Shown here piece after piece: positions 1 through 58,923 of a stretch of 64,000 nucleotides of DNA. The notes below the pieces were generated by a model, which was not told the DNA's origin, did no database searches, and worked only from the letters and a program-made list of their open reading frames with translations. Source of the stretch: Auanema rhodensis (lineage: Eukaryota; Animalia; Nematoda); NCBI GenBank assembly GCA_964057225.1, contig OZ059894.1, positions 11,594,001-11,658,000 of the forward strand. Reading direction: 5' to 3'. Every line of letters starts with the position of its first letter. The stretch's first letter is position 1. The position numbers and the translations under genes were made by a program.

Positions 1-2236
1 GATCAGATGACTTCAAAAGTTGGTAGGCATGAGTGACTTCACAGACGTCTGACAGGTGTTGGAGTCGAGAGAGACCAAGTCCGCCGTAGTTAGTTGGCAG
101 GTAGATTGGTTCAGCACTGGCGTTTGGAGGATAGTGCATCCATCTACGGGCACAGCGTTTGAGTTCTTTGTCAAAGGCGACTAGTTTACTCTTTGGGACG
201 TGGCCATTCGTCATATGAAAATTAAGGCAGGGCATCAGGAAGGTGCGTACTGCGTCAGCTTTCTGCCATTCAGCCAGTAAGGATTTGTCAATTTTTTCCA
301 AGTGTTGACTCATGATATTCACTGTTGGAACCGCAGACTTATGTAAATGCATTCCAGTAGGGATTCCCAGGTGGGAGTAGCTGTCAAATTTGCTGAGAGC
401 GGGTAGAAAGCAGCTCTGAAGCATGTATGAGGCTGTTGATATTTTCCCTTTGTCGATCGTCAAAGTGGCGCATTTCGCTGGTTTGAAGGTCAAGCCTGTG
501 AAATTAGCCGCATTTGATGCTGCGTCCAACATTTTCTGTAGATCTTCTGATGATGAGGAGACCAGGGCAAGTTCATCGGCGTACGCTAGCACAGCGATGT
601 TGTGATTGTGTAGCTTATAGCCTGTAGAGGTTTCCAAGATGGTTTTAATTAGAGGTTCAATGGCAAGGTTGAACAGGATCGGAGATAGTGGGGATCCTTG
701 TAACACACCTGCGTGAACTGGAATGGTCGAAGTGAGTCCGGAGCCTGTCTGGATTCTTGTAGAGGCATCTGTGTATAGAGCTCGTACTCGGGATATTGAG
801 GCTTCAGCCATTCCTGACCATCTTAGAACGTCTAGCAGAGTTTCGTGTGGCAGCGATCCAAAAGCGTTTGCGAGATCAAGCCAAGCAATTGCAATTTTCT
901 CACGTTTACGTTTAGCGTCTGCAATGGTACTTTGCAACAAAAAGTTGTGTTCCATGCATCCAGCTTTGGCCACAAAGCCCTTTTGGGAGGGAGAAAGTCT
1001 TTTTTCTGCTCTTGCCCATGTTAGCAGTCGATGCGTAAGACAAGCTGAGTACGTCTTACCAATTGTGCACGAAAGTGCTATTGGTCGCCAGTTGTTAATG
1101 TCAGCTTTATCACCTTTCTTATGGATGAGGACGGTGGTCGACTCTTTCCAGGAAAAAGGGATGTGTCCTAGCTTGTGTACGGTGTTAAATATCGCTGCTA
1201 ATATGTGACCTCCTTGGTCAAATTTCTTCCAGTGCGAGTATCGAAGTCCATCAGCTCCTGGAGCCGTATCGCTGCAACGTCGTATGCGTTCCCAGACTTC
1301 CAAAGGGGTGAAAACACCTTCTAATGGGTCGGTACTAGTTGGCAAATCCGGTCTGGTGACTGTGATGGGGAGGGCTGGGCCTTGACTGCTGTGAACAGAA
1401 AGGAAGTGTTTTTCAACATCTGCAGATGGTATGGTGCAGGTTTCACTTTGTTCTCCGAGCAGTTGTCGAAAGGCTTTCTTCTTGTTGGCCCTCCAAAGCT
1501 TCTGGATCTTCATCGCCTGGGTTTTTTGGTCTTCCTCAGGTTGTGTGTGTGGTCGGCGCCTTTGTCGGAAGTTGGGAACTTTGATCATAATGTCAAGAGA
1601 CTTTCTGATTGTGTCTACCAACTCTTCCAGGACCTGCTCGAGCTCACTTTTGCACACTACCTTTTTAATTCTATCCACCCAAATATTTTCAGAGTTTCTA
1701 TTCGGATCAGGGTCGGCAAAAGATGGTTCTGTACTCGGAACCCTGATCTCGTTGAATATTTCACTCTCTCGCGGAAGGGGGGAAACTTCGGCCTCTGGGG
1801 ACAAGTCCAGAATTGGGGCCTCAAATAAGCGTACCGTTGATGGAGATCCTTGTTCCTGTCCACTGGATGATGTTTCCTCCATTGTACGCTCCTCCACGGG
1901 CGGGGTGGTCGTCCTTGTGCCTGGTGGGCGGGTGTTCCTGATCCTCCGCAATATAGGGCGGGAACTGGGCTCTCTCGGAGATAGAGGTGAGATCACCACA
2001 GTTTCCTCTATGATGCGGAGGCATCCTTCAGCTTTTTTCTGATGGCTTTTAACGGCCTTCAGATTGCTGGTGAGGCCACAGGCACGGCACTCAAATTCTA
2101 CTCCGACCTCATGTTCTCTCCGAAGATGGCGGACGAGACCATTGTGGTCTGAGTAGGATCGCGGAATAGGAGCGCAGATTGAACAAGAAAAAGGGCTCTG
2201 AAGAGGCACCTTTAGCTTGTAAAGCCCTTGCTCCAT
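1..2236 (-). CDS. Partial Zn-finger/RT ORF of copy 1; RT motif reads YADE instead of YADD
   Basis: ATG at 2236 equivalent to 30868; 572-583 reverse-complements to TAC GCC GAT GAA. Confidence 0.85.
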   Translation of the reverse strand, partial: MEQGLYKLKVPLQSPFSCSICAPIPRSYSDHNGLVRHLRREHEVGVEFECRACGLTSNLKAVKSHQKKAEGCLRIIEETVVISPLSPREPSSRPILRRIRNTRPPGTRTTTPPVEERTMEETSSSGQEQGSPSTVRLFEAPILDLSPEAEVSPLPRESEIFNEIRVPSTEPSFADPDPNRNSENIWVDRIKKVVCKSELEQVLEELVDTIRKSLDIMIKVPNFRQRRRPHTQPEEDQKTQAMKIQKLWRANKKKAFRQLLGEQSETCTIPSADVEKHFLSVHSSQGPALPITVTRPDLPTSTDPLEGVFTPLEVWERIRRCSDTAPGADGLRYSHWKKFDQGGHILAAIFNTVHKLGHIPFSWKESTTVLIHKKGDKADINNWRPIALSCTIGKTYSACLTHRLLTWARAEKRLSPSQKGFVAKAGCMEHNFLLQSTIADAKRKREKIAIAWLDLANAFGSLPHETLLDVLRWSGMAEASISRVRALYTDASTRIQTGSGLTSTIPVHAGVLQGSPLSPILFNLAIEPLIKTILETSTGYKLHNHNIAVLAYADELALVSSSSEDLQKMLDAASNAANFTGLTFKPAKCATLTIDKGKISTASYMLQSCFLPALSKFDSYSHLGIPTGMHLHKSAVPTVNIMSQHLEKIDKSLLAEWQKADAVRTFLMPCLNFHMTNGHVPKSKLVAFDKELKRCARRWMHYPPNASAEPIYLPTNYGGLGLSRLQHLSDVCEVTHAYQLLKSSD

Positions 2237-4293: not shown

Positions 4294-4420
4294 ACCAGTA
4301 TAGTAATAGAACACATATTGAAGATTAATTCGATAAGAACAATTTATTGACGTAGAGAATGTTTGTTCCGAAAAACTACAATATTAAACTATAAAAGTAA
4401 CAAAAGCGTAGAGGCAGCAA
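4294..4420 (-). pseudogene. Decayed junction: short-element 3' end / U2 nt 39-79 / short-element 5' start; present in every unit
   Basis: 4304-4344 matches U2 nt 39-79 at 36/41; flanks match the ends of 58058-58844. Confidence 0.8.
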
Positions 4421-4658
4421 AGACATGAATAAACATAAATGTAAATACAGAATTACCAGGTAGTACATAAGTATGACAAAAAATTATAAGAAAGCCATGA
4501 AAATAGAAGGTTTGTGAACAAATGAGAGGTACATCTTTGATCGTATAGTCATTTCTAAACCGTTCGTATGCTGCAGCATCGTCATAAGCGTCACTCAAGT
4601 TGAATTTCCATGTGTACTACACGATTTTCATTCTTATTGTTACATTCTTTCCCTGAGG

Positions 4659-14400: not shown

Positions 14401-17400
14401 AAGAAATGTAAAGAAACCCAAACACTATTCTCAGAAATAAACATGCATGTTCGCGAATTCTTGTCAAACGATGAACAAGTAATACAGAACCTTCCTGAAG
14501 AAGACAGATATCCGAACATGACAACCAAAATACTTGGCATATCTTTTAATAAAGAACACGACTCCTTCATTATCCCAATAAAAATAACAACGACTCACAC
14601 AAGTTACACCAAGAGAATTCTACTCAGTCAGTTACATTCAATATTTGATCCCATTGGATTATCAGCACCAATACTGTTACCCCTCAAACTTATCTTGCGA
14701 GAAATCATTAGCACAAAATTATCATGGGACCAACCCATTGACTCACACAGTATCAAGCAATGGGAACAACATATTACTCAGATTAACAATAAGCAATTAA
14801 CCATGAACAGATATTTTAAGTTTTCTGAACATGAAACACAGTTATGGGTCTTCGCTGACGCAAGCAACCAAGCAATGGCCGCTTGTTCATATTTCCAAAC
14901 AAATGGGAATATTAGTTCTCTGCTAAACGGGAAATCACGCATAGCACCCAAAAATAAAACTACAATTCCACGATTAGAGTTACTAGCCATTCGTTTAGCT
15001 GTACGAATGGCATTATCTATCGTCACCATATGTCCGAAAATAGCGAAAGTTAACATTGTGAGCGATAGCAACATCGCACTATCATGGATTGTCTCACAAA
15101 AATCTCTCCCACTGTTCATTAATAATCAAACAAATACTATAAAGAAACAGCTCAAGCAAATCGAACAAATATGTTGCAATATAGAACTATATCACGTACA
15201 AACCTCGTTCAACACAGCAGACATCGGATCTCGAGGTGCAGACATGGAAAAACTACAAGTTTCCGACTGGATTGAAGGCCCACATTGGTTAACTAAACTT
15301 TCCGTGCATAACCCTCTGACATCACTCGGCTCACCTAACAACTCGAGCAGGAATAACGCAGAATTAAAATCGGAGCATCACAATGTTGTCCACATAATCA
15401 TAGACAATCCTCCAACCCATGATATTTGGAACATTCGTGAAAACTATGATGACGTGATCAAAACAATGACAACCGTAGGGAAATTATTCAAGAAATGGTT
15501 TTTCACAGTCCATCCTAACGACGCCAACAAGTTGCAAAAAATAAAACATCTCACATCAACAGACACGCACACTGTTGAAGACATCAACATTATTGAAAAA
15601 ATTTTGATCAGTAACAGTCAATCTAATATGAGCCTTGATGACTTACAGCAAAGACATATAAATCTAAAATTCTTCAAAGATACATGGGATATTTATCGCG
15701 TAAGAAGCCGTTTACAAAATACTCTTCTTCCCGAAGAGACGAAAAACCCTATATTCCTTCTTAAAACAAACCCCATAGTTAAAAAACTGATCAACAAAAT
15801 ACACAAAGACAATAATCATCAAGGCAAACATTTCACGCTTATTCAACTCAGACAAAAGTTCTATATACCAAAAATAACCGGAGTCATTAAGCAAACATTG
15901 AAAAACTGTGTGACATGTAAAAGATTTCAATCACACCCTTATGAATTACCAGATATGCCATCGCTACCAAAAGATAGAACGATTCTTACAAGAGCATTCT
16001 TTTCAACAGGGTGTGATCTTATGGGCCCCTTCACCCTTCGAAATGGGTCTAAAGTCCATATCTGTCTGTTTACATGCATGACAACTAGAGCAATTCACTT
16101 AGAGGTAGTCACCAATCAATCCACAGTTGCTTTTATGAATGCATTCACTAGATTTATATCACGCAGAGGTACTCCAGAAATTATGCGTAGTGACTGCGCA
16201 GGAAACTTTATATTGAGCTCAAAAATATTAGAAACCCTTGAAAAAACATCGGATTACAACGAAAGAAGCTTACTAAACACACTAGCACAACAAAAAATTA
16301 AATGGATATACAACACTCCATTATCACCCTGGAAAGGTGGATGTTGGGAACGTTTAGTAGGTGTAACCAAAGCTTCACTCAAAAAATGTTTCATTCCTAG
16401 TCGAATGTCCCTGGATGACTTACACACAGCCATTGTAAAAATAGAAGCTATAATTAATACACGCCCACTCACCCATCCACACCCAGATAATTTAGATACT
16501 CTACCCATAAGGCCAATTGACTTTTTAACATCAGCCATAAAGTTTTCATTACCTGAAAACAACGCGGATACTCATATATTTGATATCCATAGCGATATTC
16601 AAACGATTCAATCAACAGAGCAAGCGCTAGAAGCGCTTCAATTATCAGAAGACTCAGCATCTAAATTTTGGAAACGATTTCAAGAAGAATATCTAACATG
16701 CTTAAAAGATATATTTAAGCATAAACACCATAGAAAGAATCACACAAACATCTTCCCCCAACCAGATGAAATAGTATTGATACAAAACGACATGTTGCCA
16801 CGAGGAACATGGAAACTAGGTCGCATCATTGAAACAATCACTAGTTCAGATGGCAACATACGTTCAGCAAAAGTTGCAACAAGCAACGGAAACATAATTA
16901 TTCGATCCATCAATCAGCTCTATCCACTAGAGATAAGATGCAACACTAACAGCAACAAAATCATAGAAGACAACTCACACATAGTTCAAGAAAATAATAG
17001 CTCAACAGATAGAACCCCACATACTGATATTGTATTAGACAATATACTTTTCGATCATCCTATAGAACATACAGATCAAACAATACATGAGAATAAAGAC
17101 ATAAATGATGTTAGCCATAATTACGATATTGCATATGAATCAGATAACTCTCAACATGATAATACATACACTCCAGAAACAGAGAATAATGAGGATGCAA
17201 CAAATGATCGACCTCAAAATAAGACAAAACAATCATCAGTAAAAACAGCAAAACATACAGAACAAGATGATGTCACTGAGAAGGAAATTATAAAAGCCTT
17301 CCCACTAAAAATGTCCTATGCTACACACCAAAGAAAAAATAAAATAAACCCAAAAGTAGCAGCTGACATAATGAAAGCGCTTTCCTTACCGATTATAATA

Positions 17401-22919: not shown

Positions 22920-23007
22920 AGCTTACGACACCCGGGATTCCCAAGCCGTCTCCGATCCAAGTACTAACCGGGCCCAACGTTGCTTGACTTGCCAGATCGG
23001 ACGGGAT
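22920..23007 (-). pseudogene. 5S rRNA 3' part (nt 32-119), interrupted by MULE
   Basis: 5S sequence stops at the TIR; remainder at 25650-25689. Confidence 0.93.
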
Positions 23008-25649
23008 GGGTGGCGGACGTTTCGTCGTCTCTAGTTTGTGAACTAGTTCAGGCTGATCATTAGAGGGCAAACTTTATGATAATGTGCTGACAACTGTCAG
23101 TGTTCATGTAACTCGGGGTGCTATTAAAGCTATAAATCTATAGAAGTCAGATATAAGTGGCTACATACCTTGAAGTGCCATCAAAATATAAATTGAAAAA
23201 AGCAGAAATTAAAATAAACATACAGTTCTATCAACCAGGCTATCATCAAACAGTTTCAAGTCAACAGTTACGTGAGTTCATAGTAATAGTTGTTAGTTTA
23301 TCTTTTCTTTCGATAAGTTTGCTTATTCACACTTTCTCATCTTTTCTCGTTCATCATGATTTTTCCTTCTACTTTCTGTCCATTTTCTCTGATGATTAAC
23401 GCTCAGGGTAAATTTGTTCTTGTTTCTCAGCCTTTTGATAATGTTCCTTCGGAGAACATAACTATCTTTTTTAATAATTCTTCGGTAAATACTCAGAATC
23501 TTGAAGTTTATTCAAATGATGTAACTTCACTCTCATTTTTGAATTTCACTCTTCCATCTTTTAATATCCCTCCATTGAGGCAGCAAAATGTTAATTTTGC
23601 TTCTGCTCTTTCTCTAGTTAATTCATCTGCGGCATCTTCTTCAGTTGAATCTGTTGCTACAGTTACTGTTCCTACTGTCAACAGCGTTCCACTGTTCTCT
23701 TCTTCTACTTCACATCTTTCTATTCAGCCTTCTTCTTCTTCTTCTGCCGTTCATTCTTCACCGTCATCTTCTCTTTCTTCTTCTCCTCCTTCTGTTTCCT
23801 CTCCTTCTTTACCTGTTCTCTCTCCTTCTTCTTCTGTTCCCTCTCCTTCTTCTTCTGTTCCCTCTCCTTCTTCTTCTGTTCCCTCTCCTTCTTCTTCATT
23901 TTCTTTGCAATCTGCAAATCCTAACTCATACGCCGCTCTCATTGCGCCTTCTAAGCAGGGTGTACACCCCTGTTTAGAATATAAATTTGAAAACTTGCTG
24001 TATCGCTACCAATTCAGTAGTAAAAGTTCTCAAAAAGCTTATTCTATTTATCGTTGCACAGGTTGTAAACATTTGGGTAAATACACTTCTATCAAAGTAG
24101 AAAATAATGTATTTCTCGAAAATCCTGTTGCTCAAAACCATCATTGTGATCCATTTTTGTTTTCTATTAACAAATGCAAAAATATCACATACTCTCTAAC
24201 TCAGAATATTAAAAGTTCAGACTCATGTTTTGAGATGAAAGCATATTCCTTATTTGTCAATGAAATAAAAAAAATATTTCATGAATCTGAGTTAGAAGAG
24301 CATGAAAAGCAAGAAGTTTCCTCTGCTTGGTTTCATGGTGGCTATGACAGTAGACGTAGAGCTATTACAAGGGCTTTAAGTTCTCGTAAAGACTTAAGAA
24401 CATCCATGACCAATGTTCCTCTGTCTCTGTCTAAAACTATCAATGGTCGTACGTTCTTGCATTTTCATGACAGCGAGTTTCATTTGTATTTCGATACATT
24501 TTGTTTGGAACTAGCTGTTCAGAATGGTTTAACTCATTTGCTTGGGGACGGTTGTTTCAAATACCAGCCTTTGGATATGGAACAAACATATACCATCATG
24601 GGCGGTTGCAGAAATGGAACAACTGTACCTCTTTTCTATTCCATTTTAAAAAATAAGAGTAGGTTCACTTATAGAAGGCTTCTTCAACATATTGCACTAG
24701 CTCTCTCCAACGTTGGTTGCATAGTTGAAAACCTTATTTTTATCTGTGATTTTGAGATCGCTGTAATAAGGGAAGCTGAAACTATTTTTAATTCTGTTCA
24801 AGGATGTGCATTTCATTATGCTCAGAGCTTGAACAGACGGTTTCTTCAACTGGGTTTGACACAAGCAGAGAAGCAATCCATTGAAATCAAACAATGGCAT
24901 GGTCGGCTGCTGGGCTTGCTCTTCCTTCAAACTGATCTTATCTCACGGTCCGGGTTACTCAATTCTCCTGTTTCTTCTGATCATCCATCATATTCTTCTT
25001 GTCTTCAAATGATCAGTTATGTGAATGAAACATGGATTGAAGGACCTTTGCGACATTATTGGAGCAAATGGGACATAAAACAGTTTCGTACATCTAATAA
25101 TGTTGAATCTTTTCACCGTAAAATGAAGACTATTTTATCTTGCTCTCATCCTCCTCTTTCTGAATTAATTACTTTTTTTCATGGTGAAAATTTGATGGCT
25201 AATCATGTCCTGATCGCTTTGTCATCGAATGTTGAGCCTGCCAGGAAAAAAAGAAAAAACGTAATTGAGAGGCAACAACGGATTGAGGTTTAGTTTGAAA
25301 ACTTTAGGAGCATCTCCAATAACCGACTGCCTAATCAGCAAGAAATAATAGCATATGTCGAGGAGATGGCGAAGTTTAACACCAGAAAATCTTATTTTTG
25401 AATCATTTAACTTGAAAAACTAAACTCTAATAAATTTTTTGAATCATATCTTTTTTTTCTAACACAAAAACCTCCTTGCCGTTTAGATTGAAAACCTCGA
25501 TTTTTTATGAACTGTTTAAGTTTTTGGGTAATTTTTAGAAGTCTAAACGACCAAAAACTGAGAGTACAACACGTGTGGTATAATTTACGACCGTTAGGCT
25601 TGCTGGGGAGAGGTTGTAAAAATAGGAGACGACGAAACGTCTCAGACCC
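23008..25649 (+). mobile_element. Mutator-like (MULE) DNA transposon
   Basis: 9-bp TSD GGACGGGAT (22999-23007, 25650-25658); 24-bp imperfect TIRs GGGTnnnnGACGTTTCGTCGTCTC (20/24); transposase ORF. Confidence 0.93.
23356..25293 (+). CDS. MULE DDE transposase (start uncertain, stop possibly premature)
   Basis: GDGCFK, ICDFE, GCAFH (CxxH) and TSNNVESFH motifs; Cys/His region YRCTGC..HHC; Ser/Pro-rich N-terminal repeats. Confidence 0.88.
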   Translation: MIFPSTFCPFSLMINAQGKFVLVSQPFDNVPSENITIFFNNSSVNTQNLEVYSNDVTSLSFLNFTLPSFNIPPLRQQNVNFASALSLVNSSAASSSVESVATVTVPTVNSVPLFSSSTSHLSIQPSSSSSAVHSSPSSSLSSSPPSVSSPSLPVLSPSSSVPSPSSSVPSPSSSVPSPSSSFSLQSANPNSYAALIAPSKQGVHPCLEYKFENLLYRYQFSSKSSQKAYSIYRCTGCKHLGKYTSIKVENNVFLENPVAQNHHCDPFLFSINKCKNITYSLTQNIKSSDSCFEMKAYSLFVNEIKKIFHESELEEHEKQEVSSAWFHGGYDSRRRAITRALSSRKDLRTSMTNVPLSLSKTINGRTFLHFHDSEFHLYFDTFCLELAVQNGLTHLLGDGCFKYQPLDMEQTYTIMGGCRNGTTVPLFYSILKNKSRFTYRRLLQHIALALSNVGCIVENLIFICDFEIAVIREAETIFNSVQGCAFHYAQSLNRRFLQLGLTQAEKQSIEIKQWHGRLLGLLFLQTDLISRSGLLNSPVSSDHPSYSSCLQMISYVNETWIEGPLRHYWSKWDIKQFRTSNNVESFHRKMKTILSCSHPPLSELITFFHGENLMANHVLIALSSNVEPARKKRKNVIERQQRIEV

Positions 25650-25881: not shown

Positions 25882-27060
25882 ACAGTAAAAAGTCCAATCA
25901 AGAGAGAAATTTTTTCAACACATAGTTGTTTTTTTTTTAAATATCATTGTTTTTCCTCATAACTCGGTTTAAACTCGTTCTAACCCGTTGAAATACGTCT
26001 AGAAAGTCTTTATAACATGCATATGTATGATAGAACTTCATATTTATTGTAATAGAAAATTTTATTTTCAGACGTCTTGGTTAACAATGATATGTTTTAC
26101 CCCCTTATAATTTTTATCATAATGTTCCTTATACGGAACGCTCAATGAAACTTGCTTCCAGAAAAATTTCTTTCTATTTTTTCTTCATATGTACGTAGAT
26201 ACTATAGAGAACTATGATAGAAAACTTTAACATTCACGAAATCATCATTTCTCATTACGCTACGGAGGTTTAAAAAGCTGTGTTTTACCTTATAATAGAC
26301 CGGAAAACCCTTGTGTTAAAACTGGACCGTTTTTACACATATAAAAATGTCCCGTATTCGGGACCCTAATGTAACTTTTGATTCCCTATATTTTTTTTCA
26401 TGAAATTTACAATCTACTGTAGAAAGAAGAATTATTTTTATAAAAACTGTAAATTTTTGAAAAATGAAAACAAAACGAAAACAAAAACAACTTTTTTTTG
26501 AACATTTTCTCACACAAGGGTCCCCCCTTACCTACTTTTTTTCTCATTACTCGTTTCAACCTCATCCGATCACTCTGCAAACATGTTTAATCGTTCTAAC
26601 TTGTTGAAATACGTCTTAAAAGTCTAAACAACATGCATATGCATAATAGAAACCACCCGAATAGGCCCCCACGCACTAAACGAGATATATACATTACCAG
26701 TATAGTAATAGAACACATATTGAAGATTAATTCGATAAGAACAATTTATTGACGTAGAGAATGTTTGTTCCGAAAAACTACAATATTAAACTATAAAAGT
26801 AACAAAAGCGTAGAGGCAGCAAAGACATGAATAAACATAAATGTAAATACAGAATTACCAGGTAGTACATAAGTATGACAAAAAATTATAAGAAAGCCAT
26901 GAAAATAGAAGGTTTGTGAACAAATGAGAGGTACATCTTTGATCGTATAGTCATTTCTAAACCGTTCGTATGCTGCAGCATCGTCATAAGCGTCACTCAA
27001 GTTGAATTTCCATGTGTACTACACGATTTTCATTCTTATTGTTACATTCTTTCCCTGAGG

Positions 27061-27210
27061 GAATGGGCCGTTCCCGCCAGCAGTGCAAGAGCGGGTCGAC
27101 CCGTGAGGTGGAGCTAGCAAGCCAGCATCTACCTCAAGTCTCAAAAATCGGTTAACCTTATTGTGAACCAATGGAACACATATCGAAGGTTAATTCGATA
27201 AGAACGATTA
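27061..27210 (-). pseudogene. U2: U2 3' part (nt 38-end) downstream of Utopia-like copy 2
   Basis: Junction ...AATAAACCAT|TAATCGTTCTT on minus. Confidence 0.92.
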
Positions 27211-30200
27211 ATGGTTTATTGAATAACTAATGTTATGATACAATAAATAACCAATAAAAAAGAGCCCAGAATCGGGGAGACGGTATTACCAGTACAACTT
27301 AAAACAGCAAGTAATTAAAAAGTACATAATAAGACACATTGCCAACAGAGGCTAAAACGACTCAAGAGTCGGGGGAGTGGGTTAAAAAAAAATGAACAAA
27401 AAAAATGAATATTAAAGCAGAACAATGAGAAATCAAGTGCCGCTATGATCAAACAATTTGAGTGCCTACGGCAATGATGTTAAAAATAAACAACAAAATA
27501 CATGTACCAATGAAGGTCAGAAAGAAAGAAACAAAAGACAAAATAAGTAATACAAAAAGTAAATACATTACAATCAAATCACAAACAAGTCAATTGATAA
27601 TTTCTTCTTCATATTGCCTTACACCAGAAACATGTTCCACGTAGATATTCCTGGCCCACTTGATGGTATCGGCGACGACGAGCTTCTCCATTAGCCGGTT
27701 GTAGTGGCTGCTGATCTTGAGTGATCGGAGGGCTTGTCCGTTGAGCGGGTCCATAGTTCCAAGCATTCCTACGACATACGCTTCTACACTAGTCTTATAA
27801 CCAAGACATTGGTATTGGCTGGCTATGTCAGCATATTTCCTCTCCTTTATCATACGCGCGGCTATCATGGCTTGACGGCGGTTTTCATAGCTCACTGTAA
27901 CATCAACGATACTACAGTGTTTTGCGTCATGATCGACCACTACTATGTCAGGTCGGAGTGTACTATTAATGCCAGGAAGAGGCTGGTTAGTGTAAACTTC
28001 TCCGTTTTTAGGCTCTGGCAGGGCTTTGATAAGACGGTCCACGATGTTGTTGTGGCGGAGTTGGATTGCTCTCGTGTGAGAGTGGCAGTGTCCAAGAACA
28101 TGTGCAGCAGTTTCGTTGGAGTAACTACACCTGCGGCACTGTTTGTTTCCTTCTCCGTGTCTTCTACAGCCATTGAGCTGGAGAGTATTGAGTCGAGCCT
28201 TGTGGATGAATCGCCAATCAGCAAACCGTATGAAATCTCCCTTCGCCATAAAGTGATTGGACGCTTTGTTGAGCATTGTGACATCAAAGACTTTCCCTTG
28301 ATCCGGTTTTTGAAGAAGGATCCGAAGGTCTTTCAGCCATAATGCACGTCGCAGGCTTCTGTGGCATAGTGAAGGTGTTAACAGTTGGTTGTTTAGATTG
28401 AGTTCTAAACCACTTTCGAGGCATGTCCAGTTAGCGTTGATGAGTTTCTTGAGTTGACGCATCGCTACTCTTACTCTAGTCCAGATGGAGGAAACATCAG
28501 ATGTTTCGGTGTCGAAAATGCCATCAACGGAACCGTTGTAATATGCAGCTGTCTCATCGTTACTGGCTTGACGTTTAATCCTTTTTGATGCTACTTTTTT
28601 TGAGTCTTGATGCGCAATATCAGCTACTACAAGATCAGATGACTTCAAAAGTTGGTAGGCATGAGTGACTTCACAGACGTCTGACAGGTGTTGGAGTCGA
28701 GAGAGACCAAGTCCGCCGTAGTTAGTTGGCAGGTAGATTGGTTCAGCACTGGCGTTTGGAGGATAGTGCATCCATCTACAGGCACAGCGTTTGAGTTCTT
28801 TGTCAAAGGCGACTAGTTTACTCTTTGGGACGTGGCCATTCGTCATATGAAAATTAAGGCAGGGCATCAGGAAGGTGCGTACTGCGTCAGCTTTCTGCCA
28901 TTCAGCAAGTAAGGATTTGTCAATTTTTTCCAAGTGTTGACTCATAATATTCACTGTTGGAACCGCAGACTTATGTAAATGCATTCCAGTAGGGATTCCC
29001 AGGTGGGAGTAGCTGTCAAATTTGCTAAGAGCGGGTAGAGAGGAGCTCTGTAGCATGTATGAGGCTGTTGATATTTTCCCTTTGTCGATCGTCAAGGTGG
29101 CGCATTTCGCTGGTTTGAAGGTCAAGCCTGTGAAATTAGCCGCATTTGATGCTGCGTCCAACATTTTCTGTAGATCTTCTGATGATGAGGAGACCAGGGC
29201 AAGGTCATCGGCGTACGCTAGCACAGCGATGTTGTGGTTGTGTAGCTTATAGCCTGTAGAGGTTTCCAAGATGGTTTTAATTAGAGGTTCAATGGCAAGG
29301 TTGAACAGGATCGGAGATAGTGGGGATCCTTGTAACACACCTGCGTGAACTGGAATGGTCGAAGTGAGTCCGGAGCCTGTCTGGATTCTTGTAGAGGCAT
29401 CTGTGTATAGAGCTCGTACTCGGGATATTGAGGCTTCAGCCATTCCTGACCATCTTAGAACGTCTAGCAGAGTTTCGTGTGGCAGCGATCCAAAAGCGTT
29501 TGCGAGATCAAGCCAAGCAATTGCAATTTTCTCACGTTTACGTTTAGCGTCCGCAATGGTACTTTGCAACATAAAGTTGTGTTCCATGCATCCAGCTTTG
29601 GCCACAAAGCCCTTTTGGGAGGGAGAAAGTCTTTTTTCTGCTCTTGCCCATGTTAGCAGTCGATGCGTAAGACAAGCTGAGTACGTCTTACCAATTGTGC
29701 ACGAAAGTGCTATTGGTCGCCAGTTGTTAATGTCAGCTTTATCACCTTTCTTATGGATGAGGACGGTGGTCGACTCTTTCCAGGAAAAAGGGATGTGTCC
29801 TAGCTTGTGTACGGTGTTAAATATCGCTGCTAATATGTGACCTCCTTGGTCAAATTTCTTCCAGTGCGAGTATCGAAGTCCATCAGCTCCTGGAGCCGTA
29901 TCGCTGCAACGTCGTATGCGTTCCCAGACTTCCAAAGGGGTGAAAACACCTTCTAGTGGGTCGGTACTAGCTGGCAAATCCGGTCTGGTGACTGTGATGG
30001 GGAGGGCTGGGCCTTGACTGCTGTGAACAGAAAGGAAGTGTTTTTCAACCTCTGCAGATGGTATGGTGCAGGTTTCACTTTGTTCTCCGAGCAGTTGTCG
30101 AAAGGCTTTCTTCTTGTTGGCCCTCCAAAGCTTCTGGAGCTTCATCGCCTGGGTTTTTTGGTCTTCCTCAGGTTGTGTGTGTGGTCGGCGCCTTTGTCGG

Positions 30201-30920
30201 AAGTTGGGAACTTTGATCATAATGTCAAGAGACTTTCTGATTGTGTCTACCAACTCTTCCAGGACCTGCTCGAGCTCACTTTTGCACACTACCTTTTTAA
30301 TTCTATCCACCCAAATATTTTCAGAGTTTCTATTCGGATCAGGGTCGGCAAAAGATGGTTCTGTACTCGGAACCCTGATCTCGTTGAATATTTCACTCTC
30401 TCGCGGAAGGGGGGAAACTTCGGCCTCTGGGGACAAGTCCAGAATTGGGGCCTCAAACAAGCGTACCGTTGATGGAGATCCTTGTTCCTGTCCACTGGAT
30501 GATGTTTCCTCCATTGTACGCTCCTCCACGGGCGGGGTGGTCGTCCTTGTGCCTGGTGGGCGGGTGTTCCTGATCCTCCGCAATATAGGGCGGGAACTGG
30601 GCTCTCTCGGAGATAGAGGTGAGATCACCACAGTTTCCTCTATGATGCGGAGACATCCTTCAGCTTTTTTCTGATGGCTTTTAACGGCCTTCAGATTGCT
30701 GGTGAGGCCACAGGCACGGCACTCAAATTCTACTCTGACCTCATGTTCTCTCCGAAGATGGCGGACGAGACCATTGTGGTCTGAGTAGGATCGCGGAATA
30801 GGAGCGCAGATTGAACACGAAAAAGGGCTCTGAAGAGGCACCTTTAGCTTGTAAAGCCCTTGCTCCATCTCTAGCAGATCTAAAGACTTACGTAGTACAG
30901 TTGCAATATCGATTTAGCCA
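27211..30920 (-). mobile_element. Utopia-like U2-targeting RLE non-LTR retrotransposon, copy 2 (3710 bp, full length)
   Basis: Inserted in U2 at nt ~38; 52-nt leader, single ORF, ~380-nt 3' UTR ending AATAAACCAT, no poly(A). Confidence 0.94.
27590..30868 (-). CDS. Zn-finger / RT / CCHC / restriction-like endonuclease protein, 1092 aa
   Basis: CSIC..H..H and CRAC..H..C fingers, WRPIAL, WLDLANAFGS, GVLQGSPLSP, YADD, CRRC..HVLGHC, RHN, RPDIVV..IVDVTV..KERKY. Confidence 0.96.
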   Translation of the reverse strand: MEQGLYKLKVPLQSPFSCSICAPIPRSYSDHNGLVRHLRREHEVRVEFECRACGLTSNLKAVKSHQKKAEGCLRIIEETVVISPLSPREPSSRPILRRIRNTRPPGTRTTTPPVEERTMEETSSSGQEQGSPSTVRLFEAPILDLSPEAEVSPLPRESEIFNEIRVPSTEPSFADPDPNRNSENIWVDRIKKVVCKSELEQVLEELVDTIRKSLDIMIKVPNFRQRRRPHTQPEEDQKTQAMKLQKLWRANKKKAFRQLLGEQSETCTIPSAEVEKHFLSVHSSQGPALPITVTRPDLPASTDPLEGVFTPLEVWERIRRCSDTAPGADGLRYSHWKKFDQGGHILAAIFNTVHKLGHIPFSWKESTTVLIHKKGDKADINNWRPIALSCTIGKTYSACLTHRLLTWARAEKRLSPSQKGFVAKAGCMEHNFMLQSTIADAKRKREKIAIAWLDLANAFGSLPHETLLDVLRWSGMAEASISRVRALYTDASTRIQTGSGLTSTIPVHAGVLQGSPLSPILFNLAIEPLIKTILETSTGYKLHNHNIAVLAYADDLALVSSSSEDLQKMLDAASNAANFTGLTFKPAKCATLTIDKGKISTASYMLQSSSLPALSKFDSYSHLGIPTGMHLHKSAVPTVNIMSQHLEKIDKSLLAEWQKADAVRTFLMPCLNFHMTNGHVPKSKLVAFDKELKRCACRWMHYPPNASAEPIYLPTNYGGLGLSRLQHLSDVCEVTHAYQLLKSSDLVVADIAHQDSKKVASKRIKRQASNDETAAYYNGSVDGIFDTETSDVSSIWTRVRVAMRQLKKLINANWTCLESGLELNLNNQLLTPSLCHRSLRRALWLKDLRILLQKPDQGKVFDVTMLNKASNHFMAKGDFIRFADWRFIHKARLNTLQLNGCRRHGEGNKQCRRCSYSNETAAHVLGHCHSHTRAIQLRHNNIVDRLIKALPEPKNGEVYTNQPLPGINSTLRPDIVVVDHDAKHCSIVDVTVSYENRRQAMIAARMIKERKYADIASQYQCLGYKTSVEAYVVGMLGTMDPLNGQALRSLKISSHYNRLMEKLVVADTIKWARNIYVEHVSGVRQYEEEIIN

Positions 30921-31016
30921 TTAACCTTATTGTGAACCAATGGAACACATATCGAAGGTTAATTCGATAAGAACGATTACTACACTTTGATCTTAGCCAA
31001 AAGGCCGAGAAGCGAT
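30921..31016 (-). pseudogene. U2: U2 5' fragment (nt 1-96) fused to copy 2
   Basis: Same junction as 2289 and 39647. Confidence 0.92.
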
Positions 31017-38900: not shown

Positions 38901-39646
38901 GTGTGTGTGGTCGGCGCCTTTGTCGGAAGTTGGGAACTTTGATCATAATGTCAAGAGACTTTCTGATTGCGTCTACCAACTCTTCCAGGACCTGCTCGAG
39001 CTCACTTTTGCACACAACCTTTTTAATTCTATCCACCCAAGTATTTTCAGAGTTTCTATTCGGATCAGGGTCGGCAAAAAATGGTTCTGTACTCGAAACC
39101 CTGATCTCGTTGAATATTTCACTCTCTCGCGGAAGGGGGGAAACTTCGGCCTCTGGGGACAAGTCCAGAATTGGGGCCTCAAACAAGCGTACCGTTGATG
39201 GAGATCCTTGTTCCTGTCCACTGGATGATGTTTCCTCCATTGTACGCTCCTCCACGGGCGGGGTGGTCGTCCTTGTGCCTGGTGGGCGGGTGTTCCTGAT
39301 CCTCCGCAATATAGGGCGGGAACTGGGCTCTCTCGGAGATAGAGGTGAGATCACCACAGTTTCCTCTATGATGCGGAGGCATCCTTCAGCTTTTTTCTGA
39401 TGGCTTTTAACGGCCTTCAGATTGCTGGTGAGGCCACAGGCACGGCACTCAAATTCTACTCCGACCTCATGTTCTCTCCGAAGATGGCGGACGAGACCAT
39501 TGTGGTCTGAGTAGGATCGCGGAATAGGAGCGCAGATTGAACAAGAAAAAGGGCTCTGAAGAGGCACCTTTAGCTTGTAAAGCCCTTGCTCCATCTCTAG
39601 CAGATCTAAAGACTTACGTAGTACAGTTGCAATATCGATTTAGCCA
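35938..39646 (-). mobile_element. Utopia-like retrotransposon, copy 3 (3709 bp, full length)
   Basis: Same junctions and ORF as copy 2 with scattered substitutions. Confidence 0.94.
36316..39594 (-). CDS. Zn-finger / RT / RLE protein, 1092 aa
   Basis: Same motifs as 27590-30868; YADD intact. Confidence 0.96.
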   Translation of the reverse strand: MEQGLYKLKVPLQSPFSCSICAPIPRSYSDHNGLVRHLRREHEVGVEFECRACGLTSNLKAVKSHQKKAEGCLRIIEETVVISPLSPREPSSRPILRRIRNTRPPGTRTTTPPVEERTMEETSSSGQEQGSPSTVRLFEAPILDLSPEAEVSPLPRESEIFNEIRVSSTEPFFADPDPNRNSENTWVDRIKKVVCKSELEQVLEELVDAIRKSLDIMIKVPNFRQRRRPHTQPEEDQKTQAMKLQKLWRANKKKAFRQLLGEQSETCTIPSAEVEKHFLSVHSSQGPALPITVTRPDLPASTDPLEGVFTPLEVWERIRRCSDTAPGADGLRYSHWKKFDQGGHILAAIFNTVHKLGHIPFSWKESTTVLIHKKGDKADINNWRPIALSCTIGKTYSACLTHRLLTWARAEKRLSPSQKGFVAKAGCMEHNFMLQSTIADAKRKREKIAIAWLDLANAFGSLPHETLLDVLRWSGVAEASISRVRALYTDASTRIQTGSGLTSTIPVHAGVLQGSPLSPILFNLAIEPLIKTILESSTGYKLHNHNIAVLAYADDLALVSSSSEDLQKMLDAASNAANFTGLTFKPAKCATLTIDKGKISTASYMLQSSSLPALSKFDSYSHLGIPTGMHLHKSAVPTVNIMSQHLEKIDKSLLAEWQKADAVRTFLMPCLNFHMTNGHVPKSKLVAFDKELKRCARRWMHYPPNASAEPIYLPTNYGGLGLSRLQHLSDVCEVTHAYQLLKSSDLVVADIAHQDSKKVASKRIKRQASNDETAAYYNGSVDGIFDTETSDVSSIWTRVRVAMRQLKKLINANWTCLESGLELNLNNQLLTPSLCHRSLRRALWLKDLRILLQKPDQGKVFDVTMLNKASNHFMAKGDFIRFADWRFIHKARLNTLQLNGCRRHGEGNKQCRRCSYSNETAAHVLGHCHSHTRAIQLRHNNIVDRLIKALPEPKNGEVYTNQPLPDINSTLRPDIVVVDHDAKHCSIVDVTVSYENRRQAMIAARMIKERKYADIASQYQCLGYKTSVEAYVVGMLGTMDPLNGQALRSLKISSHYNRLMEKLVVADTIKWARNIYVEHVSGVRQYEEEIIN

Positions 39647-39704: not shown

Positions 39705-42700
39705 TATTGAAGTAGGAAATGTTTTGCCCCGTAGGACTACAAGTAAATATTATCTAGCACAAGGCTATTAGAGAATGATAAGATACTACCTGCACTAAGT
39801 GCGTCGCATCGTAAAGGGAAAAAAAATTAAACAATGGGAGTTTAACAGCATGAAATTGAGAGAAAAGACATATCCGAGTGTGAATAAAATTACGGGTGAA
39901 CGGAACATGGAGTACGAGAGACATACAAAACGAGACTAAGTGAAAAGAAAAAGTCTTGTATCACGTTCATGAAGGTTCGACGGATCCGGTAAGAAGCTGC
40001 GGGTTCAGAAGGTCAGCTTTTATCTCGTAGTCGTGGCGCATCAGGAATTTGTGAAGCTTTCCGGCTTTGCAGACGGCTGTATTGGTCCTCGTAGGATGGT
40101 GGAAGATGTTGTCGCTTAGTGATGTTACACATAAAGATATGCAAAAATAGAACAATTCAAAGAAAAAGAGCACAATTAAAACGAGATTTGGAGAGAAGAG
40201 AAGTCTTATATCACTTTCGATGGTTCGGAAGCTCCAGTCTGCTGCTGCGGTTTAGGGGGTGCAACTGGCATGTCGGAGGCGTAGCACATCATAGGTCAAG
40301 CTTGCTGGACTCCCGGCTCGGCTGGTGGCTGTGAGTTTTCCTTGTGCTTGTTCTCGGTGGTGGTCCCTGGGCTGTCTCTTCACCAAAAATTACTATACTA
40401 ATTGCACATTTCATTTAAACGACCCATTTCAGAAGCTTTAAGAGGAAAAGCTACAATTAGCATAGGACCGCCTCAAGGCCTGGTGGATCATTCAATTTAG
40501 TTTCAATCGCCAAGTATAGCGGCCTGGGCCCTTGGGTCAATTCACTGAACCAGTGTAGTATCGATTGTTCAATGGAACACATATCGAAGGTTAATTCGAT
40601 AAGAACGATTTATTGAAGTAGGAAATGTTTTGCCCCGTAGGACTACAAGTAAATATTATCTAGCACAAGGCTATTAGAGAATGATAAGATACTACCTGCA
40701 CTAAGTGCGTCGCATCGTAAAGGGAAAAAAAATTAAACAATGGGAGTTTAACAGCATGAAATTGAGAGAAAAGACATATCCGAGTGTGAATAAAATTACG
40801 GGTGAACGGAACATGGAGTACGAGAGACATACAAAACGAGACTAAGTGAAAAGAAAAAGTCTTGTATCACGTTCATGAAGGTTCGACGGATCCGGTAAGA
40901 AGCTGCGGGTTCAGAAGGTCAGCTTTCATCTCGTAGTCGTGGCGCATCAGGAATTTGTGAAGCTTTCCGGCTTTGCAGACGGCTGTATTGGTCCTCGTAG
41001 GATGGTGGAAGATGTTGTCGCTTAGTGATGTTACACATAAAGATATGCAAAAATAGAACAATTCAAAGAAAAAGAGCACAATTAAAACGAGATTTGGAGA
41101 GAAGAGAAGTCTTATATCACTTTCGATGGTTCGGAAGCTCCAGTCTGCTGCTGCGGTTTAGGGGGTGCAACTGGCATGTCGGAGGCGTAGCACATCATAG
41201 GTCAAGCTTGCTGGACTCCCGGCTCGGCTGGTGGCTGTGAGTTTTCCTTGTGCTTGTTCTCGGTGGTGGTCCCTGGGCTGTCTCTTCACCAAAAATTACT
41301 ATACTAATTGCACATTTCATTTAAACGACCCATTTCAGAAGCTTTAAGAGGAAAAGCTACAATTAGCATAGGACCGCCTCAAGGCCTGGTGGATCATTCA
41401 ATTTAGTTTCAATCGCCAAGTATAGCGGCCTGGGCCCTTGGGTCAATTCACTGAACCAGTGTAGTATCGATTGTTCAATGGAACACATATCGAAGGTTAA
41501 TTCGATAAGAACGATTTATTGAAGTAGGAAATGTTTTGCCCCGTAGGACTACAAGTAAATATTATCTAGCACAAGGCTATTAGAGAATGATAAGATACTA
41601 CCTGCACTAAGTGCGTCGCATCGTAAAGGGAAAAAAAATTAAACAATGGGAGTTTAACAGCATGAAATTGAGAGAAAAGACATATCCGAGTGTGAATAAA
41701 ATTACGGGTGAACGGAACATGGAGTACGAGAGACATACAAAACGAGACTAAGTGAAAAGAAAAAGTCTTGTATCACGTTCATGAAGGTTCGACGGATCCG
41801 GTAAGAAGCTGCGGGTTCAGAAGGTCAGCTTTTATCTCGTAGTCGTGGCGCATCAGGAATTTGTGAAGCTTTCCGGCTTTGCAGACGGCTGTATTGGTCC
41901 TCGTAGGATGGTGGAAGATGTTGTCGCTTAGTGATGTTACACATAAAGATATGCAAAAATAGAACAATTCAAAGAAAAAGAGCACAATTAAAACGAGATT
42001 TGGAGAGAAGAGAAGTCTTATATCACTTTCGATGGTTCGGAAGCTCCAGTCTGCTGCTGCGGTTTAGGGGGTGCAACTGGCATGTCGGAGGCGTAGCACA
42101 TCATAGGTCAAGCTTGCTGGACTCCCGGCTCGGCTGGTGGCTGTGAGTTTTCCTTGTGCTTGTTCTCGGTGGTGGTCCCTGGGCTGTCTCTTCACCAAAA
42201 ATTACTATACTAATTGCACATTTCATTTAAACGACCCATTTCAGAAGCTTTAAGAGGAAAAGCTACAATTAGCATAGGACCGCCTCAAGGCCTGGTGGAT
42301 CATTCAATTTAGTTTCAATCGCCAAGTATAGCGGCCTGGGCCCTTGGGTCAATTCACTGAACCAGTGTAGTATCGATTGTTCAATGGAACACATATCGAA
42401 GGTTAATTCGATAAGAACGATTTATTGAAGTAGGAAATGTTTTGCCCCGTAGGACTACAAGTAAATATTATCTAGCACAAGGCTATTAGAGAATGATAAG
42501 ATACTACCTGCACTAAGTGCGTCGCATCGTAAAGGGAAAAAAAATTAAACAATGGGAGTTTAACAGCATGAAATTGAGAGAAAAGACATATCCGAGTGTG
42601 AATAAAATTACGGGTGAACGGAACATGGAGTACGAGAGACATACAAAACGAGACTAAGTGAAAAGAAAAAGTCTTGTATCACGTTCATGAAGGTTCGACG

Positions 42701-43287
42701 GATCCGGTAAGAAGCTGCGGGTTCAGAAGGTCAGCTTTCATCTCGTAGTCGTGGCGCATCAGGAATTTGTGAAGCTTTCCGGCTTTGCAGACGGCTGTAT
42801 TGGTCCTCGTAGGATGGTGGAAGATGTTGTCGCTTAGTGATGTTACACATAAAGATATGCAAAAATAGAACAATTCAAAGAAAAAGAGCACAATTAAAAC
42901 GAGATTTGGAGAGAAGAGAAGTCTTATATCACTTTCGATGGTTCGGAAGCTCCAGTCTGCTGCTGCGGTTTAGGGGGTGCAACTGGCATGTCGGAGGCGT
43001 AGCACATCATAGGTCAAGCTTGCTGGACTCCCGGCTCGGCTGGTGGCTGTGAGTTTTCCTTGTGCTTGTTCTCGGTGGTGGTCCCTGGGCTGTCTCTTCA
43101 CCAAAAATTACTATACTAATTGCACATTTCATTTAAACGACCCATTTCAGAAGCTTTAAGAGGAAAAGCTACAATTAGCATAGGACCGCCTCAAGGCCTG
43201 GTGGATCATTCAATTTAGTTTCAATCGCCAAGTATAGCGGCCTGGGCCCTTGGGTCAATTCACTGAACCAGTGTAGTATCGATTGTT
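39705..43287 (-). mobile_element. Four tandem 865-bp U2-inserted short elements (39705-40569, 40611-41475, 41517-42381, 42423-43287) separated by U2 nt 39-79; putative non-autonomous retroelement, type A
   Basis: 906-bp period; each 3' end abuts U2 nt 39, forming AATAAA; each 5' end follows U2 nt 79; no RT ORF. Confidence 0.85.
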
Positions 43288-43366
43288 CAATGGAACACAT
43301 ATCGAAGGTTAATTCGATAAGAACGATTACTACACTTTGATCTTAGCCAAAAGGCCGAGAAGCGAT
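43288..43366 (-). pseudogene. U2: U2 5' fragment (nt 1-79) fused to the type A element
   Basis: U2 sequence ends ...TTCCATTG then AACAATCG. Confidence 0.92.
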
Positions 43367-45559: not shown

Positions 45560-45746
45560 GAATGGGCCGTTCCCGCCAGCAGTGCAAGAGCGGGTCGACC
45601 CGTGAGGTGGAGCTAGCAAGCCAGCATCTACCTCAAGTCTCAAAAATCGGTTAACCTTATTGTGAACCAATGGAACACATATCGAAGGTTAATTCGATAA
45701 GAACGATTACTACACTTTGATCTTAGCCAAAAGGCCGAGAAGCGAT
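45560..45746 (-). ncRNA. U2: U2 snRNA
   Basis: Array copy. Confidence 0.95.
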
Positions 45747-57908: not shown

Positions 57909-58057
57909 GAATGGGCCGTTCCCGCCAGCAGTGCAAGAGCGGGTCGACCCGTGAGGTGGAGCTAGCAAGCCAGCATCTACCTCAAGTCTCAAAAATCGGT
58001 TAACCTTATTGTGAACCAATGGAACACATATCGAAGGTTAATTCGATAAGAACGATT
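57909..58057 (-). pseudogene. U2: U2 3' part (nt 39-end) downstream of the type B element
   Basis: Junction ...CTTCAATA|AATCGTTCTT on minus. Confidence 0.92.
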
Positions 58058-58844
58058 TATTGAAGTAGATAATGTTTGTCCCGGAGGACTACAATATTAA
58101 AATAATTACTGAAGCCCGAAGGCAGCGAGAAATAGTAAGGATACTACCTGCACTGAGTGCGTCGTATCATAAAAAAAGAGATAGCTAATGGGCAAGTTGA
58201 AGAGCTTGAAATTAACAATGACGTCACTAGAAGTAAAGTTTTCTATCTGCAGCTGCGGGTAAAGAGGGTCAGCGTAAGCAGAATTCAATTCTACCAACAA
58301 TTAGTGGGAACATTGAGAGAACAGATGAAGGAGGAAATTGTAACTTCAAGTAAAATAGATTATATCTTCAGCTGCGGGTAAAGAGAGTCAGCTTTGTACA
58401 GATTACTAGTTTACATAAGAAGTGGTAACATTTCAAAAAAGGAGCACAACATAAAAAACGAGACTACGGACTATGAGGTAAATGTTATCATTGTCTGGAT
58501 CGATGATTCGGCATTTGATTGCAGCTGCGGATTGAGTGGATCAGCTTGCATGGCGTCCGCATTCGACATCAGGGAAAATGATGAGTTTCTTGAGGTCCGG
58601 CTCGGCGGGCTGTTATGTCCTATTCCCTGTTGATGGTGTTGTTGTCCTTGAGCTTGTTCTTCTTCCCAGAAAAAAAAAACTGTGAAGCTGAAGAGTCCTA
58701 TTAAACGTCTTTAAACGCAAGATTAATAAGAAGCTACTACAGCTAACACAGGACCGCCTCAAGGCCTGGTAGATCAACCAGTGTTGCTTCAATCACCAAG
58801 TATTGCGGCCTGGGCCCTTGGATCAATTCACAACACCAGTATAG
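58058..58844 (-). mobile_element. 787-bp U2-inserted short element; putative non-autonomous retroelement, type B
   Basis: Same junctions as type A (U2 nt 39-79 on both sides); shares 5' and 3' blocks with type A, middle diverged. Confidence 0.85.
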
Positions 58845-58923
58845 CAATGGAACACATATCGAAGGTTAATTCGATAAGAACGATTACTACACTTTGATCT
58901 TAGCCAAAAGGCCGAGAAGCGAT
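58845..58923 (-). pseudogene. U2: U2 5' fragment (nt 1-79) fused to the type B element
   Basis: ...TTCCATTG then CTATACTGG. Confidence 0.92.

Follow-up and report, generated by a model that had tools for sequence, protein, structure and literature searches.

Antisense U2 sequence at the leader start of Utopia-like retroelements in a nematode U2/5S gene array

Among promoter-dependent site-specific non-LTR elements, the definition of the RNA 5' end and the formation of a precise 5' junction are well worked out only for R2. In that element, the P1 helix of an HDV-like ribozyme pairs the 5' UTR with co-transcribed 28S sequence, which sets the cleavage site and gives uniform junctions (PMC3774820). 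Insertion into U2 genes has been described for Utopia and Keno, whose published site is U2 nt 38/39, the downstream U2 sequence continuing from nt 39 (PMC4640811). U1- or U2-derived heads are also carried by SINEU, elements that are dispersed in crocodilian genomes and prefer a Mariner-type target (PMC4494074).

Utopia-like elements in the Auanema array

The window analysed here, a 64,000-nucleotide stretch of Auanema rhodensis DNA, is a tandem array of U2 and 5S genes on the minus strand throughout, with a repeat of about 2.48 kb. Rfam places 12 intact U2 genes and about 30 5S genes in it, all on that strand, besides seven partial U2 matches, which exact matching against an intact 190-nt U2 (45746 to 45557) resolves into four interrupted U2 genes (Table 1). 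In the three complete insertions the downstream U2 restarts at nt 38 or 39; this matches the published Utopia/Keno site, and the inserts are thus regarded as Utopia-like elements with two short non-autonomous partners, Types A and B. Within the stacked locus, BLAST shows Type A copies 1-3 each followed by U2 39-79 and copy 4 followed by U2 39-96 and an autonomous copy, the four Type A copies being 0-1 base apart from each other. The U2 heads differ by family, ending at nt 79 in Types A and B and at nt 96 in the autonomous element, and are retained through stacking, which fits an RNA-carried segment better than a cut by a single enzyme. Between A and B, conservation is limited to the 3' end and the 110-120 nt that follow the U2 head.

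In the autonomous protein Pfam recognises RVT_1 only, with no Exo_endo_phos domain; the apurinic-type endonuclease that would indicate Keno is absent from the Pfam result. N-terminal C2H2 fingers, a C-terminal CCHC motif and a PD..D/E-x-K-type motif, read as RPD...D-V-T...K, were recognised by eye rather than by profile. Judged by sequence, the window elements appear to be Utopia-like non-LTR retrotransposons with a restriction-like endonuclease. Homologues of the protein, at 38-56% identity, come from scorpion, beetle, spider, nematode and metagenome sources, among others. At scorpion, beetle, spider and two metagenome loci the element is flanked by U2 restarting at nt 39-40, and at two further homologue loci (L001 and L005) no U2 was found.

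The array holds other insertions and repeated features. A BEL/Pao-type LTR retroelement with an unbroken 2643-aa ORF (11452-19383, plus strand) encodes Pao peptidase, reverse transcriptase, integrase and phlebovirus G2-like envelope domains. A 645-aa ORF (23356-25293, plus strand), with a weak MULE transposase match below the Pfam cut-off, sits in extra DNA adjoining a truncated 5S gene (22920-23032). About 30 nt 3' of every U2 gene lies AUCGUGUAGUACAC (4612-4625, minus strand, and 14 other units), which contains a sense copy of the U2 8-mer GUGUAGUA and could be either the relic of an old insertion or a piece of a 3' processing signal.

Table 1. Positions of the U2 insertions, leader motifs and candidate ribozyme parts in the window
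Feature	Position	Strand	Details
Interrupted U2 gene	31016 to 27058	-	U2 1-96, 3710-bp element, U2 38-190
Autonomous element, 3710 bp	27211-30920	-	flanks: U2 1-96 (30921-31016), U2 38-190 (27058-27210)
Autonomous ORF	27590-30868	-	1092 aa
Second copy of the 3710-bp autonomous element	starts 2384	-	runs off the window
Stacked locus	43366 to 35785	-	U2 1-79, four tandem 865-bp Type A, autonomous copy, U2 38-190
U2 nt 1-79, head of stacked locus	43288-43366	-	79 nt identical to intact U2
Type A copy 1, non-autonomous, 865 bp	42423-43287	-	first of four copies in the stack
Interrupted U2 gene	58923 to 57906	-	U2 1-79, 787-bp Type B, U2 39-190
Type B, non-autonomous, 787 bp	58058-58844	-	U2 head 58845-58923
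U2 nt 31-48, 5' arm of predicted foldback	43319-43336	-	includes GUAGUA (43328-43333) and insertion point 38/39
Type A leader +1..+18	43270-43287	-	antisense to U2 31-48; contains 12-mer 43270-43281
Type B junction motif	58838-58848	-	U2 nt 76-79, then leader +1..+7 (CUAUACU)
Fossil B-like junction motif	4297-4307	-	3' of U2 gene; 15 copies in window
Autonomous motif of the first-pass annotation, CGAUAUUGCAACU	30899-30911	-	first bases within the 8-mer common to Type A
Autonomous leader +23..+35	30886-30898	-	UACUAC (30892-30897), then GUAAGU
Conserved core of A/B 5' module, weak HDV-like candidate	43193-43250	-	descriptor search
Candidate HDV-like P1	43223-43229 (3' strand, leader +59..+65)	-	with U2 39-45 (43322-43328)
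Candidate HDV-like P2	43245-43250 with 43193-43198	-	AGGGCC with GGCCUU
Candidate HDV-like P3/L3	43230-43243	-	immediately upstream of P1 3' strand

Antisense U2 sequence at the start of the leaders

The first-pass annotation had quoted four leader motifs as able to pair with the branch-point recognition sequence of U2, and all four are present on the minus strand where it placed them. The Type A 12-mer indeed forms 12 pairs with one bulge (RNAduplex, -13.0 kcal/mol), and the match exceeds what had been claimed, since leader +1..+18 aligns antisense with U2 31-48, where 16 of 19 columns agree and the rest are one mismatch and two single-base indels. An independent repeat search returned a perfect 9-nt inverted repeat (43270-43278 vs 43328-43336), and identical antisense blocks lie at 42364-42381, 41458-41475 and 40552-40569. 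For the first 40 nt of the leader against U2 31-43 the z-score is -5.3, with 0 of 2000 dinucleotide shuffles as good; when any 13-nt window of U2 1-79 is allowed, p rises from 0.003 with 40 nt of leader to 0.07 with 130 nt. Local alignment of 300 nt of leader with all of U2 gave nothing significant, the signal being confined to the vicinity of the junction. The complementarity of Type A, observed directly at this position, is real and non-random. The U2 of this array reads GUAGUAAUCG (45704-45708, minus strand, and all other U2 copies), against GUAGUAUCUG in scorpion, beetle and spider U2; the Type A block lacks one A and so fits the canonical spacing of the GUAGUAUCUG type.

Of the four cases, only Type A reaches significance individually. 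Type B and the fossil do form the 11 pairs attributed to each of them (-10.6 kcal/mol in both), but four of these pairs come from U2 nt 76-79, and the leader bases alone give p 0.14 and p 0.10, respectively; both retain just a 7-nt core in addition to the four U2-derived bases. In the autonomous leader, the proposed partner CGAUAUUGCAACU turned out to be unsupported, with -7.2 kcal/mol and p 0.26 against shuffles when paired with U2 31-43. A better partner, the exact GUAGUA complement UACUAC, lies 10 nt downstream of it; UACUAC pairs with U2 34-39 in both the MFE structure and the ensemble, where two wobble pairs extend the pairing, and further copies of the +23..+35 leader segment that holds it are found at 39612-39624 and 2254-2266. 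Directly after the block, the autonomous leader carries the 5'-splice-site-like GUAAGU (30886-30891, minus strand). GGUAAGU also occurs 60-75 nt past the U2 junction in scorpion and beetle leaders (L002 positions 3242, 5711, 9962 and 14393; L006 position 8175), and the beetle occurrence can be aligned in sense with the U2 recognition sequence and may thus represent diverged target sequence, not a splice signal.

The leaders of Type A, Type B, the fossil and the autonomous element look homologous in sequence, as one inherited feature and not four. The claim that all leaders carry the motif counted a single feature repeatedly, the derived characters being common to them. The 8-mer AAUCGAUA lies within the first 13 nt of both the Type A and autonomous leaders and nowhere else on either strand of the 64-kb window, and both have UCGAUU in place of U2 UCGUU, which together indicate common descent. 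Over 110-120 nt the leaders of Types A and B show about 85% identity, with an 11-nt indel at the start, and the fossil, fixed in every array unit (15/15), is a decayed B-like junction. The antisense similarity continues beyond the motif: in gapped alignments at about 68% identity, Type A leader +1..+46 is colinear with U2 8-48 (p 0.006) and autonomous leader +2..+50 with U2 21-60 (p 0.012). Stem I and stem IIa of U2 are palindromic and parts of the autonomous alignment match in sense too; in that alignment the GUAGUA block alone can be called unambiguous.

Differences between the motifs had been described as wobble-compatible. Counted against the perfect complement of nt 31-39 across three lineages, all three substitutions in the shared core do keep the pair, but about 44% of random substitutions would do so by our estimate, and the observation is therefore weak evidence for selection. 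Sense-oriented U2-like pieces also occur 100-180 nt into Types B and A (58726-58742 and 43107-43117, minus strand), for example UGUAGUAGCUUCUUAU against U2 32-50, and fit repeated 5' extension by captured target.

A survey of Utopia-like leaders for the anti-GUAGUA motif, as the first-pass annotation had proposed, gave inconsistent results. When the first 40 nt of each leader were paired with the local U2 recognition sequence, p was 0.017 in scorpion family 1, 0.60 in scorpion family 2, 0.82 in the beetle and 0.49 in a metagenome element (L003), and the spider leader, with a 6-bp duplication, shows no such motif by eye. These tests speak against a general anti-GUAGUA motif in related elements and make the motif specific to this lineage of elements. 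The beetle leader nonetheless holds a colinear antisense-U2 stretch (p 0.001), whose best blocks face U2 44-52 and 17-28 and not GUAGUA, and antisense target sequence in leaders may accordingly recur beyond this lineage. A scan for metagenome relatives of the A/B leader with its conserved 19-mer returned 36 matches, all of them (36/36) chance matches in bacterial contigs: 35 are GC-rich, and the single AT-rich one lies in an apparent integrase gene.

Predicted folding, expression and possible roles

Each element lies behind a U2 head (nt 1-79 or 1-96) and would presumably be transcribed from the U2 promoter and start. As the head would be co-transcribed with the leader, the RNA could fold back on itself. 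In Type A, U2 31-48 would pair with leader +1..+18, enclosing stem-loop IIa and burying both the branch-point recognition sequence and the insertion point. Internal stack copies are preceded by U2 lacking nt 1-38, so the full stem is possible in the first copy only. The analysis establishes the complementarity, where it lies, that several families inherited it and how the RNA is predicted to fold; transcription from the U2 start, folding of this kind in vivo and whatever function it may serve are what we infer.

Ensembles were predicted for the U2 head with 60 or 120 nt of leader, with shuffled leaders as a control. GUAGUA is paired with probability 0.91 in Type A, 1.00 in Type B (including pairs with U2 nt 76-79) and 0.96 in the autonomous chimera, against 0.22-0.27 in the head alone. 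With shuffled leaders the mean is 0.43-0.57, or about half; the observed pairing is reached by a fraction of 0.03-0.05 of the shuffles for Type A and the autonomous element and 0.07-0.15 for Type B when its leader bases only are counted. The expectation that the chimeras would fold with GUAGUA paired is thus borne out in all three, but by a modest margin over shuffles, and the ability to pair is in itself a low bar. Further pairs in the A and B folds join U2 1-16 and 25-29 to the conserved core of the leader; their per-window p of 0.013-0.03 loses significance once corrected.

Three RNA-labelled runs contain Type A at a depth of 8-12, U2 at about 10 and the autonomous element as a 157-nt trace only. 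A third related family, absent from the window, reaches a depth of 62-98 in runs X1-X3; it has in common with Type A the 32 nt of leader core at +80..+111 (40459-40490, minus strand) and then diverges. These runs are Logan assembled contigs, which end at graph branch points (e.g., at U2 nt 50) and indicate presence only, and they were compared with the stretch without U2 nt 1-38, left out because of near-identity to human U2. The depth ratios depart from the copy numbers seen in the window, an argument for genuine expression of the short elements. At the other end of the elements, U2 A39 and A40 complete an AAUAAA that straddles the 3' junction in both A and B (58056-58064; e.g., 42421-42429, minus strand), and in the autonomous element and its relatives the hexamer lies just inside the 3' end. 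Such placement suggests polyadenylation inside the downstream U2, which would leave U2 bases at both ends of the RNA.

We tentatively favour the anti-GUAGUA foldback being a structural part of the element's 5' RNA module, a plausible reading that we would put somewhat short of an even chance. The leader would then start with a short inverted segment derived from U2, with the motif as its best-preserved block, and the stem would define, process or present the RNA 5' end during retrotransposition, as in R2. Several lines of evidence point this way. The insertion site, family-specific heads and stacking indicate that the U2 segment travels with the element; the Type A block is significant near the junction (z -5.3, p 0.003), and colinear antisense similarity extends beyond it (p 0.006 and p 0.012). 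AAUCGAUA and UCGAUU speak for common descent, three chimeras fold with GUAGUA paired, and the beetle leader offers its own antisense stretch (p 0.001) at other U2 positions. Types A and B are conserved at their 5' and 3' ends only, the pattern that functional end modules would leave, and RNA-labelled runs show Type A at U2-like depth. A precedent is R2, whose 5' UTR pairs with sequence of its host gene (PMC3774820). Against this, the U2 arm is fixed, so that no covariation is possible, Type A alone is significant, with p 0.07 over 130 nt, and the relatives are inconsistent. The autonomous alignment is partly palindromic, the full stem is confined to the first stack copy, and the RNA contigs do not include 5' ends.

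A serious rival, possible if on the unlikely side, is that the U2 target was inverted once, for example by snap-back or template switching at the 5' junction, and has since been inherited and left to decay, its pairing being functionless. Decay and indels are accounted for equally well by such a neutral relic: over the roughly 40 nt in which the antisense similarity runs colinear, identity is only about 68% and indels are numerous, 11 nt of the antisense segment are gone from Type B, and the motif is missing in most relatives. The leaders hold sense U2-like pieces too, as would be expected from repeated capture of target at the 5' end (model in PMC3774820). Less easily reconciled with neutrality are the anti-31..39 core, which is the longest intact block in both the A and autonomous leaders, the three substitutions across lineages, all of which keep the pair, and the fact that this block begins the sole 5' region conserved between A and B. 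A spliceosomal purpose, with the leader masking GUAGUA in the chimeric RNA and so blocking branch-site engagement and spliceosome entry, was the hypothesis of the first-pass annotation. The high pairing probabilities of the three ensembles relative to the head alone agree with it, but random leaders pair GUAGUA about half the time, and the Type A stem reaches across the insertion site to nt 48, beyond what GUAGUA alone would need. Furthermore, most relatives are without the motif though they carry or abut the same U2 bases, and the U2 heads, which end at nt 79 or 96, include neither the Sm site (about nt 99-105) nor the 3' stem-loops. An RNA without the Sm site and 3' domain should not assemble into a U2 snRNP anyway. 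Spliceosome avoidance is thus possible but poorly motivated; we do not think that the stem is a spliceosome-directed device and consider masking distinctly unlikely. Pairing in trans, in which the leader would anneal to the U2-sense target strand across the nick, or to U2 snRNA, and so position the RNA or cDNA end, appears highly doubtful: known elements with a restriction-like endonuclease locate their targets through protein domains, and Type B keeps only the upstream half of the block. What speaks for it is that the Type A block covers nt 31-48 and with them the 38/39 insertion point, not GUAGUA alone, and that the same protein family cuts exactly at 38/39 (PMC4640811).

The leaders were also searched for a ribozyme of the kind known from R2. 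With E-values up to 10, Rfam finds only U2 in the A and B leaders, and no ribozyme or other RNA family; a 5S-rRNA origin of the A/B core, considered by eye, was dropped without Rfam support. HDV-like ribozymes are nested double pseudoknots with a P1 of 6-7 bp, whose 3' strand comes right after P3/L3, plus P2 and P1.1. A hand-written HDV-like descriptor gave one candidate, the same in A and B, with predicted cleavage exactly at 38/39. A match with that exact start occurs in 1.2% of shuffles, but some match in 60%. The candidate P1 is weak, at -4.9 kcal/mol in A and -1.3 in B, compared with -13.7 for the competing anti-GUAGUA stem; A and B agree in the core but differ in the P4 region, and the only change in the P1 3' strand preserves pairing. 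The bases usual for an HDV active site, as taken from general knowledge and PMC3774820, are a G and U forming a reverse wobble in L3, the catalytic C of J4/2 and, in P1, a basal G.U pair; the candidate departs from this pattern, with CCGCUAUA in L3, CCACCA in J4/2 and an A-U pair at +1. A strict descriptor with P1 near nt 39 found nothing in the autonomous, scorpion, beetle and metagenome leaders, and a relaxed one matches everywhere and is uninformative. That A and B hold a divergent HDV-like ribozyme, with P1 formed by U2 39-45 and leader +59..+65 and cutting the co-transcript at 38/39, seems quite improbable on this modelling. If it were true, unit-length RNA would begin with U2 39-79, explaining the family-specific "duplications" and tandem units, and the anti-GUAGUA stem, which overlaps P1, would be a competing conformer that restrains cleavage while the U2 head is present.

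U2 offers a second, unrelated target at which elements carry 41-58 nt of target and start with antisense target sequence. Should the foldback belong to a functional 5' module, promoter-dependent site-specific elements would have arrived repeatedly at pairing of the leader with host RNA, and the stem would provide a simple mutable handle on 5'-end handling in Utopia-type elements. Should it be a relic, the leaders would record inverted capture of target at 5' junctions.

Comparison with Utopia, R2 and SINEU

The resemblance to Utopia (PMC4640811) extends from the U2 restart at nt 38/39, insertion in the orientation of the gene and tandem insertions to 5' boundaries that vary by family and a single ORF with N-terminal zinc fingers, RT, CCHC and a restriction-like endonuclease motif. 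That description gives duplications of 0 to 20 bp, against family-specific U2 duplications of 41 and 58 bp here, and neither the non-autonomous partners (865 and 787 bp) nor the antisense U2-like leader start figures in the paper. With R2 (PMC3774820) the elements have in common site-specific insertion, presumed co-transcription with a host RNA gene, a leader complementary to upstream host sequence and host sequence that would be carried on the element RNA and give uniform 5' junctions. The ribozyme, by contrast, is only a candidate here, uses another leader segment and has a weak P1; moreover, no P3/L3 lies ahead of the U2 31-48 stem, which is therefore not at the position of the P1 3' strand, unlike in R2. 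SINEU (PMC4494074) likewise comprises short non-autonomous retroelements with a U2-derived head, but Types A and B occupy the U2 site proper and lie downstream of a live U2 promoter.
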